From assembly GCF_052425735.1 (NCBI RefSeq), contig NC_135760.1:12276001-12340000 (forward strand): a stretch of 64,000 nucleotides of DNA. The letters are read 5' to 3'. Both the position numbers and the translations under genes were made by a program. Positions 37,263-44,059 of the stretch are shown here, in pieces; positions within the stretch are counted from its first letter, which is position 1, and each line of letters starts with the position of its first letter. Source of the stretch: Oculina patagonica. Lineage: Eukaryota. The notes below the pieces were generated by a model that did no database searches, was not told the origin of the DNA, and saw only the letters and a program-made list of their open reading frames with translations.

Positions 37263-37724
37263 TAGCAAACATCCCTTTTAAAGCAGATTTTACAGAATAA
37301 TTATTACTTTACTCAGGATTTATTGCTATTTCAAAGTGGATAACTCCGTCAAAAACTTCTTTTGCGATTAGGTTATATTTTTCCAGGCTCCAGATACAAT
37401 TTATTCAATACAATCTTTTCACCACACAAAACTTAAAATTTATATGACCTTACATGCAAAAGGAATGATGTGTTGATGTCGTTACAAAACTATAAGAAAT
37501 TCAATTGACTTGAGGTGATTGTTTTATTTACATTCAACAAGGACTTGAAGCTGCTATTTATTTATTCTATATCTTAAAAAAGCTACTGTTCAGATATCTT
37601 AACAAAATGGCATGTGGTAAAAAAGTGGAATAATCACTTATTTAAATAACGTCCGTAATATTTCTATATATGTTTTTTCTATGTAATTACCAGCATTGTG
37701 TGATTTATACTGTGCGAACTACGA

Positions 37725-38411
37725 TTACTGGACATACAGATATGCGGTCTCCATTAATGTTCCATGCACATAATTACATCGATAATGAAGATTTTTAGAT
37801 TTTCCGACAGCCGAGCATCCATACCCGTCCTTACAAGAACTGACTCCTACTCCGAAGGCAAAATCATCGGGAAAACAAGTCGCCTGTTGGTCCCCTATGC
37901 ACCCTATCCTGGCAATGTGAGTCGTTTTAACAGGGGTAGTGTTAGGGTTGTCTTTTTGCGGATTGCAAGTGTTAGCTAAGTTAAGACCGCACCAGCCTTG
38001 ACGAAGAACGGATAAATCACAACTCTTTCCAAAAGCTTTGAGAAGTGTAGCGAAGGTGTACTGCTCGGCCGGGACAACGCCAAACTGCGTTTTAAACAAC
38101 TCTGTGAGAGACATGTTTTTATTGTGCGTGAAAGGCGCGCAGCTTGTTGTAGGACCTGATAAACACACCAAGATCTTGTTACTTGAAACCTTTGACCAAC
38201 CATCGTTTTTCATCGATGTCTTCTGAGTTGTGTCTGGTGAGGTTTCGTCGTTGAACGTTTTTTCATTTGCCCAGTTTTCACTGACGGGTGAAAATTCATC
38301 TTTGCCACCGTTTATCCGGGCAACCAGGGTCCAGCCCCCCAGCGCCGTGGCTGGTTTGTCTGGATTGAGAACGTCGCCTTTAGGCTCCACTCGAATCATT
38401 TCACAATGTGT
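37725..38411 (-). CDS. Alternative terminal exon B of the same gene, encoding a second paralogous head domain
   Basis: Acceptor ttgattgcag|ACACATTGTGAA has the same phase and first 12 nt as exon A. The frame is open for 228 codons, all 11 Cys align with exon A, and AATAAA signals lie downstream. Confidence 0.75.
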   Translation of the reverse strand, partial: THCEMIRVEPKGDVLNPDKPATALGGWTLVARINGGKDEFSPVSENWANEKTFNDETSPDTTQKTSMKNDGWSKVSSNKILVCLSGPTTSCAPFTHNKNMSLTELFKTQFGVVPAEQYTFATLLKAFGKSCDLSVLRQGWCGLNLANTCNPQKDNPNTTPVKTTHIARIGCIGDQQATCFPDDFAFGVGVSSCKDGYGCSAVGKSKNLHYRCNYVHGTLMETAYLYVQ

Positions 38412-38686
38412 CTGCAATCAAACGAACAGCGTTCATTACTCAACCGGTTACCAGTCCCTTAAAAAAGATGAAGACACCTAACTATTGTCGAGGCCGAAAT
38501 CACCCACCATATAGGCTCGAGTAATATTCGTGAATTTTAATTGTGTGAAAATTTCGTTGACTTCGGCATTGCCAAAATGAGATTTCGTGGTGGTGGTGGT
38601 TTTCCATCCCGTCAGCAATAACTGGGCAAACCCAAACGTCGACGAACAATAAGATGCTGGCCAGTTGTTTAGCAGAAATCCACTGT

Positions 38687-41600
38687 TTAGAGAACATAAA
38701 GGAAAGAAGTCTGATTAAACGCGCCATAACTTGGCACGCATGCGTAGTGCAAGTTCGGTGTCATTGGCCCGACTTTGGAGCATCCGTAACCATCATAGCA
38801 ACTCGTCACACCGATACCAAGTGCGTAATCATTCGGTCCACAAGTCCTCAAAAGGTCGCCTAGGCAACCAATCCGTGCAATGTGATTGGTTGGATTCAGA
38901 TTTGGATTGATGTCTTGCGGATGGCAGACGCTGGCGGTATTTAAACCGCACCACTGTTTATGCATGCGAGACAGATCACAACTTTTGCCAAACGCCCGCA
39001 AGAGTGAGTCTACTGTGTAGCGCTCGTCCACAGTCACCCCAAACTGATTATTAAACAGTTCTGAGAGAGACATATTACGGTTGTGCGTGAATGTGGCGCA
39101 GTGCGTTTTTGGACCATCGTAGCATACTCGTAGTATGTTACTGGGCAAGTCTGCCCAGCCAACATTTTTCATGACCTTCTGTGTGTTGGTGTCTGGTGCA
39201 GTTTCGTCGTTGATGACGCTATTGGTTGCCCAGGTATTGCTGACTGGGGAAAATTCGATCGAACTGCCCGGGACCCGAGCTACGAGCGTCCAACCGCGCG
39301 CCACCATTGGTTCAATTTCACAATGTGTCTGAAATTCAAATGAAGCACCCAGTGCCCAGTCAACAATTTACTGGATCACTTCAACTGACACCTCTGCTGT
39401 CTTAAAAGTACATACGCGTAGTTATCAATAGCTGGACACGCTTGCCCTGCCTTAAAAATCTTAACAATAAACCTACTTTTGAATAGAGCGTTTTCCAAAC
39501 AGTAGTCAGAAAACCGACACACAAGTGTCATTTAATCCTACCAATCACAAACACAAATAACTCAGCCAACCAATCAGAATTTAATGCAAAGTATACAATC
39601 GGATCCAAGCGCTGGAAAACGTGGTCACGATTGGTTTTGTTTTTGCTCTTGATTGGTCGAAAAAAAGCACGTTTTATCTGATTGGATACAACGTCCACAA
39701 CGTTTCTAACCGATTTTATTGAGCTCAGAAAACGCAAAGGAAAGAAATTTGGAAAATGCTCTATCCCTCAAATAAAAAAAATTAATTTTTTTGATAATAG
39801 TTATAATAATAAAAGATTTAAAATAGTTCATGAAAAGCGCCAGCTTCAAATGTCAATCTTTTCTCGCCAATTTACTCGCAATTATCAAACTGCAAAGTGC
39901 AGCACTTCCACACTACATCTCTAGCAATATTTGATTGATTATCCAACTCGGAAATCGTCAGGTACGTGTGACGTAACAATGTGTGACGTCTCAATAGCGT
40001 AGGTTTTTGGTAAAGGAAAGTTTAAAAAGTGTAGCATAGGAATGTTAAAAGCTACTCAAATCGCTTCAAATCACTTTAGTTTCGGGATAAAGTTGAAGTT
40101 CTTATTTCAGGTTATGTGAGTCAATATTTACAGAGATTTCTTTACCCAGTTTACTGACCTGGAAGGGTTTGTCTTTGCCTTTTATCCAGTAAGCGCCGCT
40201 CACGGCACCAGCATCTTTCTTATATATCTCTTGACAGTTGGTTGCCGGATTATCCTTACTGTAATTTTACAAAGGAATTTTCAGGGATGAGATTAGTAGA
40301 TTCCAATAACTGAATCCAATCGCCGAGACTAAACTGAACCCGCGGACTTCTTTGAATGCGTTTCTAAGCAACTTTAACCTGGTATAGTAACGATTAGCGC
40401 GCTATCTTCTGATTGGATACTTAGGATTGGAAACTGTTCGTGTCCCGGCTTACAACTTTGCTATTTATATGCTTTATTATCATGCATGGAACATGAAATA
40501 ACAGCCATAATAGTCGCAATGGAGAACTAGAGATGATTCCCCTGTCGGGTGGTGATGTTGTCAGCGGAATTAGGCGCTCGATTAACCACTAACTATGGAT
40601 TAACAAAAGTCGTTTTTAAAAGGCAACAAAATATACCCATCAAAGCGTCACTTGCCCATTGCATTTTGCCATTCCTTTAGATAATACGACATAATGAAAC
40701 AATAAAATCCGTGCTTGCATTAACTTACCATCTTCCCAGGCCACATTTTGGTTTGCCAGATAAAGGGCCGCCAGCGCCGCCAAAATTGCTCTGCTGGATA
40801 AAAATGCTGATGTTAGATATTAACTTGTGCTTTTGATTGCTCTAAACCTTTAATCCATGCAATCAGTAGGTTTGAACTTCAAATGAACCGAGTTGAAAAA
40901 GTCCCTTTAGGGCTGATTCCCAAGACCTTTAGCCAACGTGATCCTCCATTGACATGCCAGTGTTATCTTATCAAATAAATATATCCACAAAGTTTAAAAC
41001 AAACATCCACCTGCGAGATCCGCGCGCGTAATCCAAGTATTTGCTCGCATCCTGCACAATCGCTGCAAGTCACGCAAACGCTTCGAGAACTGCGACACTG
41101 AGTCGCTTTCTGCGCATTAACTGCGAGGGTTGTTGAACTATGTGCATTCAGATTAATTACCTTGCAGGTCTTTTCCAGTGCCACTATTTTTGCTTGAAGT
41201 GTCGCTATCACGCCAGGAGAACACTGGAACTGAAAAGAAAAGATGAAAGTTAAAGGGTTAAAAAAAGTGTGGCAGTTTTTCTGTTTTAGAATGTCTTAAG
41301 CAATTAAAATTTTAAAACAACCTCTTAGTATCATCAAGTATTTCAAATCAGTTAAAACTGAAATAGGTCCGGTCTCGTGAAGATTCCCGCATTGTTCAGG
41401 ATATTTTAAAGATGTATAGGAATAAACTGCAGCTTAGATGGTAGACATGATAGGAAAATAAGAGTTAATACATTACCGGAGATGGCTGACAAACACCTGG
41501 ATCTCCGTTTGGACCCTAAAATTAAAATAACAAATCAGATTACTTTGTCCGGTGTATGTCCAGTTCACATCAACCAACAGACACTGAACTGAACGTTTTA

Positions 41601-44059
41601 CGTCTTGAGTGATGAGGAGAATACCGACTACATACCGTAATTACTCGAATAAGCGCCGCGGCGCTTATTAAATTTTTCGCGCCTTAAGTGCGGCGCTTAT
41701 TGAAAATTTGGACGGCACAAAGAATATAATCTTTTACAGTATTGGAAATAGCGTCTTTTGATTGTCAGTATTCGTTTCTTGCTAAAGAGAGAAGTGGCGC
41801 TAGCTGCCCTGCGGCCTTCACAACATTTTCAGAACTACGTATTGTAAGAAAGTTGGATAGAAGAACTAATAGGCGGGCGGTAAAACAATCACTTTGAACT
41901 TCAAAACATCGCTTTTGATGAAAAGGAAGTGTCCAAGTTTGTTTTGAGTTGCTTTGTAGTGCTGTTTTTAGTGTAACGGAATTCATCGAATAAGCGCCGC
42001 ATCGGGACTGCGGCGCTTATTAACTTTTTTGTCCAAAATGCGGCGCTTATTCGAGGGCGGCGCTTATTCGGGGGCGGCGCTTATTCGAGTAAATACGGTA
42101 CACTGAACAAGTGTTAGCTTTTATATGTAAGCTTTTTTAGGTTTCCTTTCAGTGAACAGCGTACCCTTTGCTTGTGATGGATGGAGGGAGTTTGCAAATG
42201 ATAATATTTTTCTGAAGAGCATATGAGCCATTCTTTAGTTCTATTATAGATGTACACGTATATGTATTATTTGCTCTCTTGCTCCCTCACCTTAGGTCCC
42301 GCTGCTCCTGGAGGTCCGGGTGGTCCTGGGGAACCCTACGATTATAAACACGTGACCAATTAGCTCAATTATTTACAGGTTGTATCGTAGTGTAACAATA
42401 TAACGAGTTCATCTGAATAAAACTGGTGAAGACATAAACAATAAGCGCTTTACTTTTTGTATTTTTTTGTCATTCTTTCCTTCAACTCATTTTCAAGAAT
42501 AATGCAAAACTATAATTTCCAAACCTTAACTCCAGGGTTTCCGCTAGCTCCGTCTTTCCCCTTTAATGCAAGAGTCATCATGTTCTGTAGAAAAATAAAT
42601 TTGCAAATAACTATTCTCACGAAGCCATCTTGTATAAACCAGTACGCAAGTCACACTCGCAGTAAGCAGGGCTTATCGTGTATTTTGTTATGTCCTCAAA
42701 ACACTTGACGGATTTTTTTCTACAACTTATTCTCGTCGCACTGCATGTTATTCCCATCACTTTGAGCAACTTTAATTTCTGATAGAATAATTATGAAATG
42801 GTCTGAAATGAAACTTGACTCCGAAACTTTAGGCGCATGTTTCGTTCACATGTTTCGAGGCTGAACGAACAGCCTACAAACAATGCCGCGTATCATTGAC
42901 TAGTGAAGGGATTGGAATTGGTCAAGGTTGTTCTTAGAACGCTTTTCCAAGGAAAAAAGCGCCGTCGGGACGAGGTTGACTGGTACCAACTTTACACAAA
43001 CCGATACAAATGTGTATTGTTTCTAAGCCAAAAGTAATTAAGGACAGAATCTTTTGCCAAATTTACTACAAACCTGTGAAACTTTCACTTTACATTGAGG
43101 GCCGTTGGGACATCCACTATTAGCCGGTGAACCTGATGCCGGAGCCTGTTGCGCGGGCTTGAAAATAAAGAAAAAAGATGTTACAACCACACGGAGATAT
43201 TGCTTAGTTAACTGTTGTTTTGCGCTTCGCCGCGCTCTAGTCTGTATATTGGCTTAAAATGATCCGCAGAAACATTTTAAATTATTTTAGTCGTAAGCAG
43301 GAGCCATAATCCTGTCGTAAGTGATCACTCCAGTAGAAAGAAACTGAGGCACTTGTGCAAGTACTGCAACCAATCAAAGTGCAGATGTCATTGTATTGAC
43401 CAATTACGAAAAAATCCCTATATCGATCACAGGTTGTTCACGTGACTTTTCCCGCGCTCAGGAGTCACTCGCTTAGAAATTTTATTGGCTTGCAAGTTGT
43501 TTGTTTCAGATCGTTACAACAATCATCAGAAAACTCTTTAAGATGTGCAAACTGCTTTCGTACAGAAGAAATGAAAGGATTTTGTCATATATGTTTAAAA
43601 GCACTTCTCCTTTTCCTCCGTTATTTTATATTTAACCTTGATTTGTCTTCCAAATCTACAACTACGAAAACGTTAAATTTAAACGACCAAGTTTGATCAA
43701 GGAATGGATACAGAAATATTCGTTAACAGCGTTGTACAGTTTAAACTTTACATGCAAAATTGACGCACCTGTGCACTTGCAGCAGGGGTTGCCGCGGCCG
43801 GGGGATTATCCGGGGCGGGTACAGGTGGTGACTGCGAATTTACCCCTGGGGCCTCCCTAGGGGTACTATCCGATACTGCTATGGGAGGAAGGTTCTTGAG
43901 ATCCACAGTGGATTCTACACTTGCGTTAGCAGGCGCTGGTACCAGGAGATATGTTCCATCGGAGTTTTTCTTTAAAAGAAACTTTCCATTTGACTCAACT
44001 GGTCCAAGAAAGATCGCCAAACATACAAAAGAAATAAACACGACCAATGTACAGCTCAT
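38687..44059 (-). CDS. Secreted short-collagen protein with a fibrinogen-related/USOMP5-like head, isoform A (exons 43769-44059, ~43089-43157, 42525-42560, 42291-42335, 41477-41515, 41161-41229, 40729-40793, 40159-40258, terminal exon A 38687-39328)
   Basis: Signal peptide MSCTLVVFISFVCLAIFLGPVES, Pro/Ala-rich region, 12 contiguous Gly-X-Y triplets, heptad neck IATLQAKIVALEKTC, then NPATNCQEI..SGAYWI..THCE..GWTLVAR (FReD/COLFI-type start) and ARIGC..GIG..LYV, like coral USOMP5-type domains. All splice phases match. Confidence 0.8.
41635..42098. mobile_element. Tc1/mariner-type MITE with TA TSD
   Basis: ta|ccgtaattactcgaataagcgccg ... cggcgcttattcgagtaaatacgg|ta, with repeated gcggcgcttatt subterminal motifs. 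Confidence 0.85.

Follow-up and report, generated by a model that had tools for sequence, protein, structure and literature searches.

Alternative predicted intelectin-like heads are joined to one collagen stalk by a choice between two 3′ splice sites in the coral Oculina patagonica

Hydra nematogalectin, a cnidarian-restricted short Gly-X-Y protein, has A and B forms that arose by tandem exon duplication before the Anthozoa/Medusozoa split, and it has relatives in Myxozoa (Hwang et al. 2010; Shpirer et al. 2014, PMC4195985). In Drosophila PGRP-LC's 3′ variable region, alternative 3′ cassettes place different recognition domains on a common N-terminal part (PMC6191721). Docking/selector arrangements consist of one docking element that is complementary to several selectors and pairs with one of them at a time (PMC6191721, PMC6071210), and the Ivanov–Pervouchine model regards tandem duplication as the origin of such competing RNA structures (PMC6071210). 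The subject of the present analysis, LOC144646623 of the coral Oculina patagonica, is a real gene with ten coding segments and a secreted-protein product. It is located in the window, the 64,000-nucleotide (nt) stretch of contig NC_135760.1 that was analysed; coordinates are window positions, and all parts of the gene are on the minus strand. A reading of the letters of the window alone (the original prediction) had described a collagen-stalked secreted protein with two interchangeable terminal exons for alternative heads, A and B. This description is right in outline and wrong on the 3′-end mechanism and the domain boundary. The best overall explanation, to which we assign a probability of about 0.72, is that the gene encodes a collagen-stalked intelectin-like lectin in which an ancient pair of heads is swapped by choice between two acceptors, with a common 3′ end and with competition for an RNA element, the dock, as the likely basis of the choice. 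The head swap is well supported and very old, and the most interesting part is the dock, which has exonic selectors across Cnidaria.

The RNA evidence consists of assembled short-read contigs (Logan) from four public runs, aligned to the region. In these contigs, a single donor at 40159 joins either the acceptor at 39328, which leads into the head A segment (38687-39328; 213 codons and a stop), or the acceptor at 38411, which leads into the head B segment (37725-38411; 228 codons and a stop). The donor follows ...KPFQ in phase 0, as had been proposed, and lies at the end of exon 7 (40159-40258), which encodes the first ~32 residues of the head domain (NCQEIYKKDAGAVSGAYWIKGKDKPFQ) and serves both heads. 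Contigs that abut 39331 in runs X1, X4 and X7 extend by 16-25 letters (GAAGGGTTTGTCTTTGCC...) fused at 39328, and a contig that abuts 38414 in run X1 extends by the same 16 letters, fused at 38411. The loose ends at 39331 and 38414 (GAAGGGTTTGTCTTTG...) match the end of exon 7 in reverse complement, and its last three bases, CAG, are common to both acceptors. Both junctions named in the original prediction, 40159->39328 and 40159->38411, are thus present in RNA, and the claim that the same stalk takes either head holds. In all four runs, the exon-B contig begins exactly at 38414, at the common cag, and shares a 30-nt overlap with the preceding contig, the behaviour of a k=31 graph at a point of convergence of two paths. 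In a related coral, full-length messenger RNA (mRNA) contigs carry the stalk with head B (L001-L006; 475-amino-acid (aa) open reading frame (ORF)), and Montipora has both a stalk-and-B mRNA and a full-length stalk-and-A mRNA, contig L009 (P0064, P0065, P0069). The two acceptors are separated by 917 nt, and a 275-nt gap (38412-38686) lies between stop A and the head B segment. If the proximal acceptor is chosen, head A is translated, and the gap and the whole of B stay as 3′ untranslated region (3′UTR). If the distal acceptor is chosen, A and the gap are spliced out as an intron, and translation yields head B. The reading frame stays open in both spliced products, which have 464 aa (A form) and 479 aa (B form).

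In an alignment of the gaps of three corals, which is otherwise poor, the sole well-conserved block besides the acceptor-proximal region is a non-coding element at 38608-38640. This element, the dock, is complementary to both heads, at homologous segments near their 5′ ends. It pairs with a 33-nt A-arm in head A (39215-39247; codons PVSNTWATNSV; 79% complementary) and with a 23-nt B-arm at the homologous codons of head B (38266-38288; SPVSENWAN; 87% complementary). The pairings of the dock with the two arms are the top inverted repeats in every lineage, and in Acropora digitifera, Montipora and the L007 coral the same pairings span 22-39 nt at 77-91%. Relative to dinucleotide-shuffled gaps, the local duplexes have z-scores of −4.2 to −11.3: in Oculina, a free energy (ΔG) of −51 kcal/mol is calculated for dock:A-arm (z −4.7) and −55 kcal/mol for dock:B-arm (z −4.2), and the z-score for dock:A in A. 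digitifera is −11.3. Hydra and Rhopilema also have a gap element, the sequence of which is unlike that of the coral dock and which pairs with another homologous segment of both heads, at the GWTLVAR... codons rather than the SPVSxxWA codons that hold the coral arms. The corresponding values are −57.7 kcal/mol (z −10.1) for dock:A and −55.5 kcal/mol (z −9.0) for dock:B in Hydra, and −51.3 kcal/mol (z −7.0) and −56.6 kcal/mol (z −7.2), respectively, in Rhopilema. Between these two species one compensatory pair is observed: a synonymous Thr codon, ACT in Hydra and ACC in Rhopilema, is matched by A and G, respectively, in the dock. When the Oculina sequence from the A-arm to the dock is folded, the dock:A-arm helix closes the structure in both the minimum-free-energy and the centroid solution (z −3.1). 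Likewise, the fold from the dock to the B-arm is closed in both solutions by the dock:B-arm helix, which encloses a ~320-nt domain that includes acceptor B (z −3.6). In a Hydra fold that contains both arms, the dock is split between the A-arm and the B-arm. RNAduplex on whole exons yielded only chains of small helices without meaning. An intron-to-gap pairing (ACTGGGCA/TGCCCAGT, from the intron 5′ of A) was considered as well and was superseded by the exon-arm pairings, which are much longer. From these sequence comparisons, the complementarity of the dock to both heads appears to be beyond chance and evolutionarily maintained, and the dock and its arms constitute a docking-site/selector layout that probably sets the splice choice.

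In the proposed mechanism, the dock would pair with either the A-arm or the B-arm, and the two helices would be mutually exclusive. Pairing with the A-arm would loop out ~575 nt of head A and bring acceptor B near the donor-proximal region, which is expected to favour B. Pairing with the B-arm would instead close the ~320-nt domain around the branch site and acceptor B and so favour A. Competition between the helices could thus set the A:B ratio, proteins that stabilise or unwind a helix could give cell-type control, and the products of the gene would be lectin trimers, with two recognition surfaces as alternatives. A more far-reaching version is possible and is advanced here tentatively, as somewhat less likely than the contrary: that the dock and its exonic selectors have been a working RNA switch for mutually exclusive lectin heads since before the cnidarian radiation. 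The arrangement would then be the first docking/selector system outside Bilateria, with selectors in coding sequence, and the protein would represent an undescribed class of collagen-stalked intelectin-like lectins, whose persistence in Myxozoa would suggest a role in the cnidocyst or polar capsule, or in another core cnidarian structure, parallel to that of nematogalectin A/B.

The strongest competing account, which we consider unlikely, holds that the helices are real and act after splicing and only in the A mRNA, as a long double-stranded stem in the coding sequence and 3′UTR that controls stability, translation, localisation or editing. In its favour, the dock is present in the A mRNA and absent from the B mRNA, and the dock:B-arm helix falls wholly within the 3′UTR of the A mRNA. 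Such a role would leave unexplained why, in four lineages, the dock can pair with either head in duplexes of near-equal stability, which is the signature of docking/selector systems (PMC6071210, PMC6191721), and why the helices bracket exactly the two competing acceptors.

A second account concerns the 3′ end. The original prediction had treated A and B as terminal exons with separate poly(A) sites, such that A transcripts would be cleaved in the gap. The sequence features on which it drew are present: the gap is 275 nt long and contains an ATTAAA at 38541-38536, 146 nt past stop A, and three AATAAA motifs, which are poly(A) signals common to both mRNAs, follow stop B at 37523-37566 (37566-37557, 37528-37523). 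A minor short form that ends in the gap would be compatible with the contig data. However, the depth of the gap equals that of exon A in four runs, also on the 3′ side of the ATTAAA, whereas the depth of true introns is ~0, and single contigs that span 38385-39331 connect exon A with exon B across the gap. The Montipora A contig L009 has all upstream introns spliced out and carries the 238-nt gap and an intact head-B frame after stop A; its length is 2666 nt, compared with 1680-1694 nt for the B mRNAs. The ATTAAA is not conserved, as the gaps of Montipora and the L007 coral contain neither AATAAA nor ATTAAA in the three-coral alignment. In the RNA contigs, use of a poly(A) site between A and B was not seen and the gap has no loose A-tails; past stop B, the RNA depth falls stepwise from 37717 to 37450. 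Based on the gap depth, the read-through contigs, L009 and the unconserved ATTAAA, the two mRNAs therefore differ in which of two 3′ splice sites is used and have the same poly(A) region, past B, and true alternative last exons are improbable.

The choice is an old one. In RefSeq, Hydra vulgaris LOC100214365 has isoform X1 with head B and isoform X2 with head A on an identical stalk, and Montipora isoforms X1 and X2 likewise share an identical stalk and have one B-type and one A-type head; automatic annotation names these products 'uncharacterized protein'. Thus both isoforms are already listed for these two genera, and what is new here is the conserved dock with exonic selectors across Cnidaria. 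The genomic order exon 7 -> A -> B is found in Hydra (L010), Myxobolus squamalis (L011), Rhopilema (L012) and A. digitifera (L013), with an identical phase-0 boundary before a Thr codon in all four loci, and the A-then-B layout is also present in Montipora. In a maximum-likelihood tree, the A heads all group in a single clade (95/91), and so do the B heads (100/98). Anthozoans and medusozoans are represented in both clades, and the bacterial and protist sequences fall outside. Oculina head A groups with Hydra X2 and Myxobolus in the first clade and Oculina head B belongs to the second, and the tree gives no sign of concerted evolution between A and B. Since the clades are separate and each spans anthozoans and medusozoans, the A/B duplication, together with its order, is placed by the sequences before the last common ancestor of Anthozoa, Medusozoa and Myxozoa. 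In Myxobolus squamalis, a B-type head is located 3′ of the A-type head (L011, QWKW01001077.1, 2700-3270). It has a normal start (TWCFISK...GGWTLVARA), followed by stop codons and a loss of ~45 residues, and over its other 155 codons, which are intact, identity to Hydra B is 70%; the interruption may reflect a recent break, a small intron that went unrecognised or a fault in the assembly. The retention of the gene in Myxobolus, which has a highly reduced genome, gives a hint, and only a hint, of a function in a core cnidarian structure such as the cnidocyst or polar capsule. In several public models, the two heads are read in series as one protein (A. digitifera XP_015757733.1, P0045; A. cervicornis KAK2562303.1, P0070; an old Hydra model, P0057), and in others (P0001 and P0067/68) head A is called as a separate small gene that starts within the intron. 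Both kinds of model are annotation errors that result from the tandem arrangement of the heads.

Both exons are conserved in other corals (Montipora and A. digitifera each have A and B), and sequence divergence points to strong purifying selection on both heads. The ratio of nonsynonymous to synonymous substitution rates (dN/dS) for head A is 0.026 between Oculina and the L007 coral (synonymous divergence (dS) 0.58) and 0.058 between Oculina and Montipora (dS 1.74), and for head B it is 0.027 between Oculina and the L001 coral (dS 1.20). These data bear on the view that head A is a decaying or noisy duplicate and that only head B is functional. The O. patagonica isoforms found in the protein collection all carry head B, and exon B is deeper than exon A in all runs, as this view would have it. 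Against it, dN/dS is only 0.026-0.058 at dS 0.6-1.7, all 11 of 11 Cys residues are retained, A-type heads are kept in Hydra, Rhopilema and Myxobolus, the A-path depth reaches ~22-51% of the exon-B depth (a rough figure from contig depths), and the head A structure model is a confident one, as described below. Decay of head A is thus very improbable. That exon B is a separate gene with its own promoter in the gap is highly improbable: its depth does exceed that of the upstream exons in some runs, an excess for which 3′ bias and the presence of B in A transcripts account, but an exon 7->B junction contig exists, other corals have full-length stalk-and-B mRNAs, and B starts in phase at its acceptor without an ATG or signal peptide of its own.

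Segments A and B were also compared directly. Each is preceded by a polypyrimidine tract and cag, starts with ACACATTGTGAA and runs to its own stop, at the coordinates first proposed. The estimate by eye that about half of the residues are identical is borne out by BLASTP (54% identity, E 5e-87), and each of the 11 Cys residues per head falls in the same alignment column as its counterpart. The predicted ~14-residue insertion near the start of B is seen in the same alignment and corresponds to a low-confidence loop in the AlphaFold model. Across Cnidaria, A is set apart from B by only five fixed positions and three indels, most of which lie in the C-terminal third. The heads also have a conserved Asp/Gly/Cys-rich block (RIGCIGD...PDDYA.G.GV.SC.DG.GC), at most a possible counterpart of the Ca2+-dependent intelectin site for exocyclic 1,2-diols. 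The swapped unit had been taken for the whole head domain; however, the domain begins in the common exon 7, and the swapped portion makes up ~85% of it.

AlphaFold models were examined for head B with its exon 7 part and for Montipora head A (predicted local distance difference test (pLDDT) scores of 91 and 93, respectively). VIA-align matches the entire domain to intelectin-1 and XEEL over ~210 residues with Z 14.2-14.6, the best alignment being that of model residues 5-265 with 4wmq residues 34-313 (Z 14.6, root-mean-square deviation (rmsd) 3.4 Å, 210/265 residues). By comparison, Z is only ~7 for ficolins, angiopoietins and fibrinogen (6.5-7 for ficolins). Foldseek matches the intelectin fold at E 5e-8. 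At the sequence level, a family profile matches intelectin-1, XEEL and lamprey serum lectin at E 8e-11 to 6e-10, over profile positions 3-100 only, a region that takes in the GGWTLVA motif. The exon 7 part aligns to the starts of intelectin and fibrinogen-type domains, and the first ~50 residues of bacterial and protist relatives match Pfam Fibrinogen_C or COLFI. A single head sequence has no Pfam and no PDB match, and neither heads nor whole proteins match PF00147 (Fibrinogen_C) at E up to 1. Based on the fold scores and profile matches, the head is therefore modelled as an intelectin-like (X-type lectin) member of the fibrinogen-related superfamily. An exhaustive HMMER search retrieved only 43 cluster representatives among 1.84 billion proteins, all of them cnidarian, bacterial or protist. 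The head domain also occurs at ~40% identity in bacterial/archaeal-type proteins (P0007, P0009, P0010), and prokaryotic fusions join it to EGF arrays with a proprotein-convertase P domain or to DUF2341, with further examples in Myxococcota and phage-labelled ESM Atlas clusters. The domain is thus far older and wider than the cnidarian gene.

Several points weigh against the explanation favoured here. All of the RNA evidence comes from assembled short-read contigs, not single molecules, and in O. patagonica the exon 7->B junction is represented by one short contig from one run (X1), together with the contig break at 38414 elsewhere. Rare polyadenylation in the gap lies beyond the resolution of the contigs. 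When scored permissively and without gaps, the dock matches of Oculina-A, Hydra and Rhopilema only equal the best of 100 shuffles, and it is the gapped energies of the pairings that are clearly better. The arms are nearly invariant within corals, which confines covariation to the between-lineage comparison. The effect of the helices on splicing, and the direction of this effect, are predictions. Trimerisation and sugar binding are predicted from architecture and fold, and the residues of the intelectin ligand site could not be aligned with the heads.

Upstream of the heads, the signal peptide and a variable Pro/Ala-rich region are followed by 12 Gly-X-Y triplets, a Cys-flanked heptad neck and a Gly-rich linker, after which comes the ~250-residue head. 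Exon 1 (43769-44059; 97 codons, an ORF with a GT donor) contains the ATG, the signal peptide and the Pro/Ala-rich N-terminal region, and its translation is identical to the N-terminus of XP_078362400.1. Exon 2 (43074-43157) has 28 codons, two of them for Cys, and is defined by the RNA joint 42584->43074 and checked splice sites. The Gly-X-Y run begins in exon 3 (42525-42584; RNA joints in four runs, cut +1), continues in exon 4 (42291-42335) and ends with the final triplets in exon 5 (41477-41515), the latter two exons also being supported by RNA joints. Exon 6 (41161-41229; RNA joints) encodes the neck between Cys residues (VIATLQAKIVALEKTCK), with the heptad spacing read from the sequence. 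The upstream exon set of the original prediction is supported by RNA joints except that it missed exon 6b (40729-40793), a 65-nt exon for the Gly-rich linker with joints 40258->40729 and 40793->41161 in four runs. Exon 7 begins at 40258 after cag, and its junction with exon 6b splits a Cys codon. The acceptor of exon 6b (40788-40796) is a NAGNAG site (cag|cag) that adds or omits one Gln, and this single residue is the difference between RefSeq isoforms X1 (P0059, 479 aa) and X2 (P0044, 478 aa); the upstream site is used in the RNA contigs examined. The isoform B translation matches XP_078362400.1 (LOC144646623 isoform X1) exactly. On the whole protein, Pfam Collagen scores 26.9 bits, slightly below its cut-off of 27.2. 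From the architecture and fold, the stalk and neck predict trimers that show three intelectin-like heads, of type A or B. The pre-collagen segment (~42540-42584; ...KVSQNMMTLALKGKDG in the coral and ...QLTTLSQALYSPFP..LHLHLKGKDG at ~235-265 of Hydra P0051) resembles by eye the pre-collagen region of nematogalectin (...MVSQLLEQNLTLGFFLKGLNG), and the stalks of the two families might be related despite their unrelated heads. In two intronic stretches, 41630-42100 and 39440-39837, the RNA contig depth is in the hundreds to thousands, divergent copies are numerous, and there are rearranged joints and loose ends. The first stretch is rich in AATAAGCGCCGC-type motifs, and both resemble high-copy repeats or transposable elements that are expressed. 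In A. digitifera, a gene with a XendoU domain lies immediately downstream of the lectin gene (L013 8466-9539).

This locus represents a very old domain swap by splicing in an early-branching animal phylum, with one stalk and two heads that have been kept apart for >0.5 billion years. If the splice choice is under the control of the dock and arms, mutually exclusive splicing guided by RNA structure would be older than Bilateria, and the idea that tandem duplication automatically creates competing structures would gain support. There are also practical consequences. The O. patagonica annotation is without the A isoform, and because the 3′ end is common and the B sequence lies inside the A mRNA, the isoforms are indistinguishable in 3′-tag single-cell atlases and with exon-B probes; to tell them apart, an assay must target exon A or a specific junction. 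The family, as yet uncharacterised, also offers a candidate lectin for the immunity, matrix or cnidocyst biology of cnidarians.

Among proteins of known fold, the intelectins (human ITLN1, Xenopus XEEL and lamprey serum lectin) are by far the best structural match to the heads. They are likewise secreted, Cys-rich and oligomeric, with the oligomeric state of the coral protein predicted from its architecture. Identity between the two groups is only 14-20%, and sequence alignment fails over the C-terminal two thirds. A collagen stalk or alternative heads were not found in any known intelectin. In overall design, the coral protein is like the ficolins, which also have a signal peptide, a Cys-containing N-terminus, a Gly-X-Y stalk, a neck and a fibrinogen-superfamily head. 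It differs from them in that the cnidarian heads lack a Fibrinogen_C match and resemble the ficolin fold less closely, the stalk is much shorter at 12 triplets, and ficolins do not swap heads by splicing. The skeletal matrix protein USOMP5 of Acropora (B8VIU6) was considered as a head type as well. Foldseek aligns 140 head residues to it (rmsd 2.9 Å), in the N-terminal half only and at 19% identity, and look-alike cnidarian clusters lie next to a 'skeletal organic matrix protein 5' cluster in the ESM Atlas; USOMP5 is absent from the sequence-search matches to the head, and a USOMP5-type head was rejected since the fold match is only partial. A paper on the Nematostella matrisome mentions cnidocyte fibrinogen-related proteins, to which LOC144646623 could not be mapped. 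A literature search, which included intelectin with nematocyst and nematocyst proteomes, turned up no publication on LOC144646623, its isoforms or the RNA element.

Nematogalectin, to which the original prediction had likened the gene, is apt as an analogy: its A and B forms also come from tandemly duplicated coding segments of one gene. The likeness is one of the way of working and not of family membership. The nematogalectin head is a SUEL-type Gal-lectin, unrelated to the intelectin-like head; the four head motifs of the LOC144646623 family are all absent (0/4) from nematogalectin A, B and C and related alignments, and neither heads nor whole proteins of the family have a Gal_Lectin match in Pfam. 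Nematogalectin C, with its long variable N-terminus and presence in Myxozoa, was entertained as an identity for the gene and rejected because of its SUEL-type head and lack of the family motifs. The histories differ too: nematogalectin A and B look concerted within species, whereas A and B of the present family form clean orthologous clades. With PGRP-LC and other docking/selector systems, LOC144646623 shares alternative segments for the heads, a single dock and an origin in tandem duplication. It departs from them in that its selectors are part of the coding sequence of the alternative segments instead of being intronic, the choice is between two options only, the distal head, when unused, remains in the mRNA as 3′UTR, and the host is a cnidarian.

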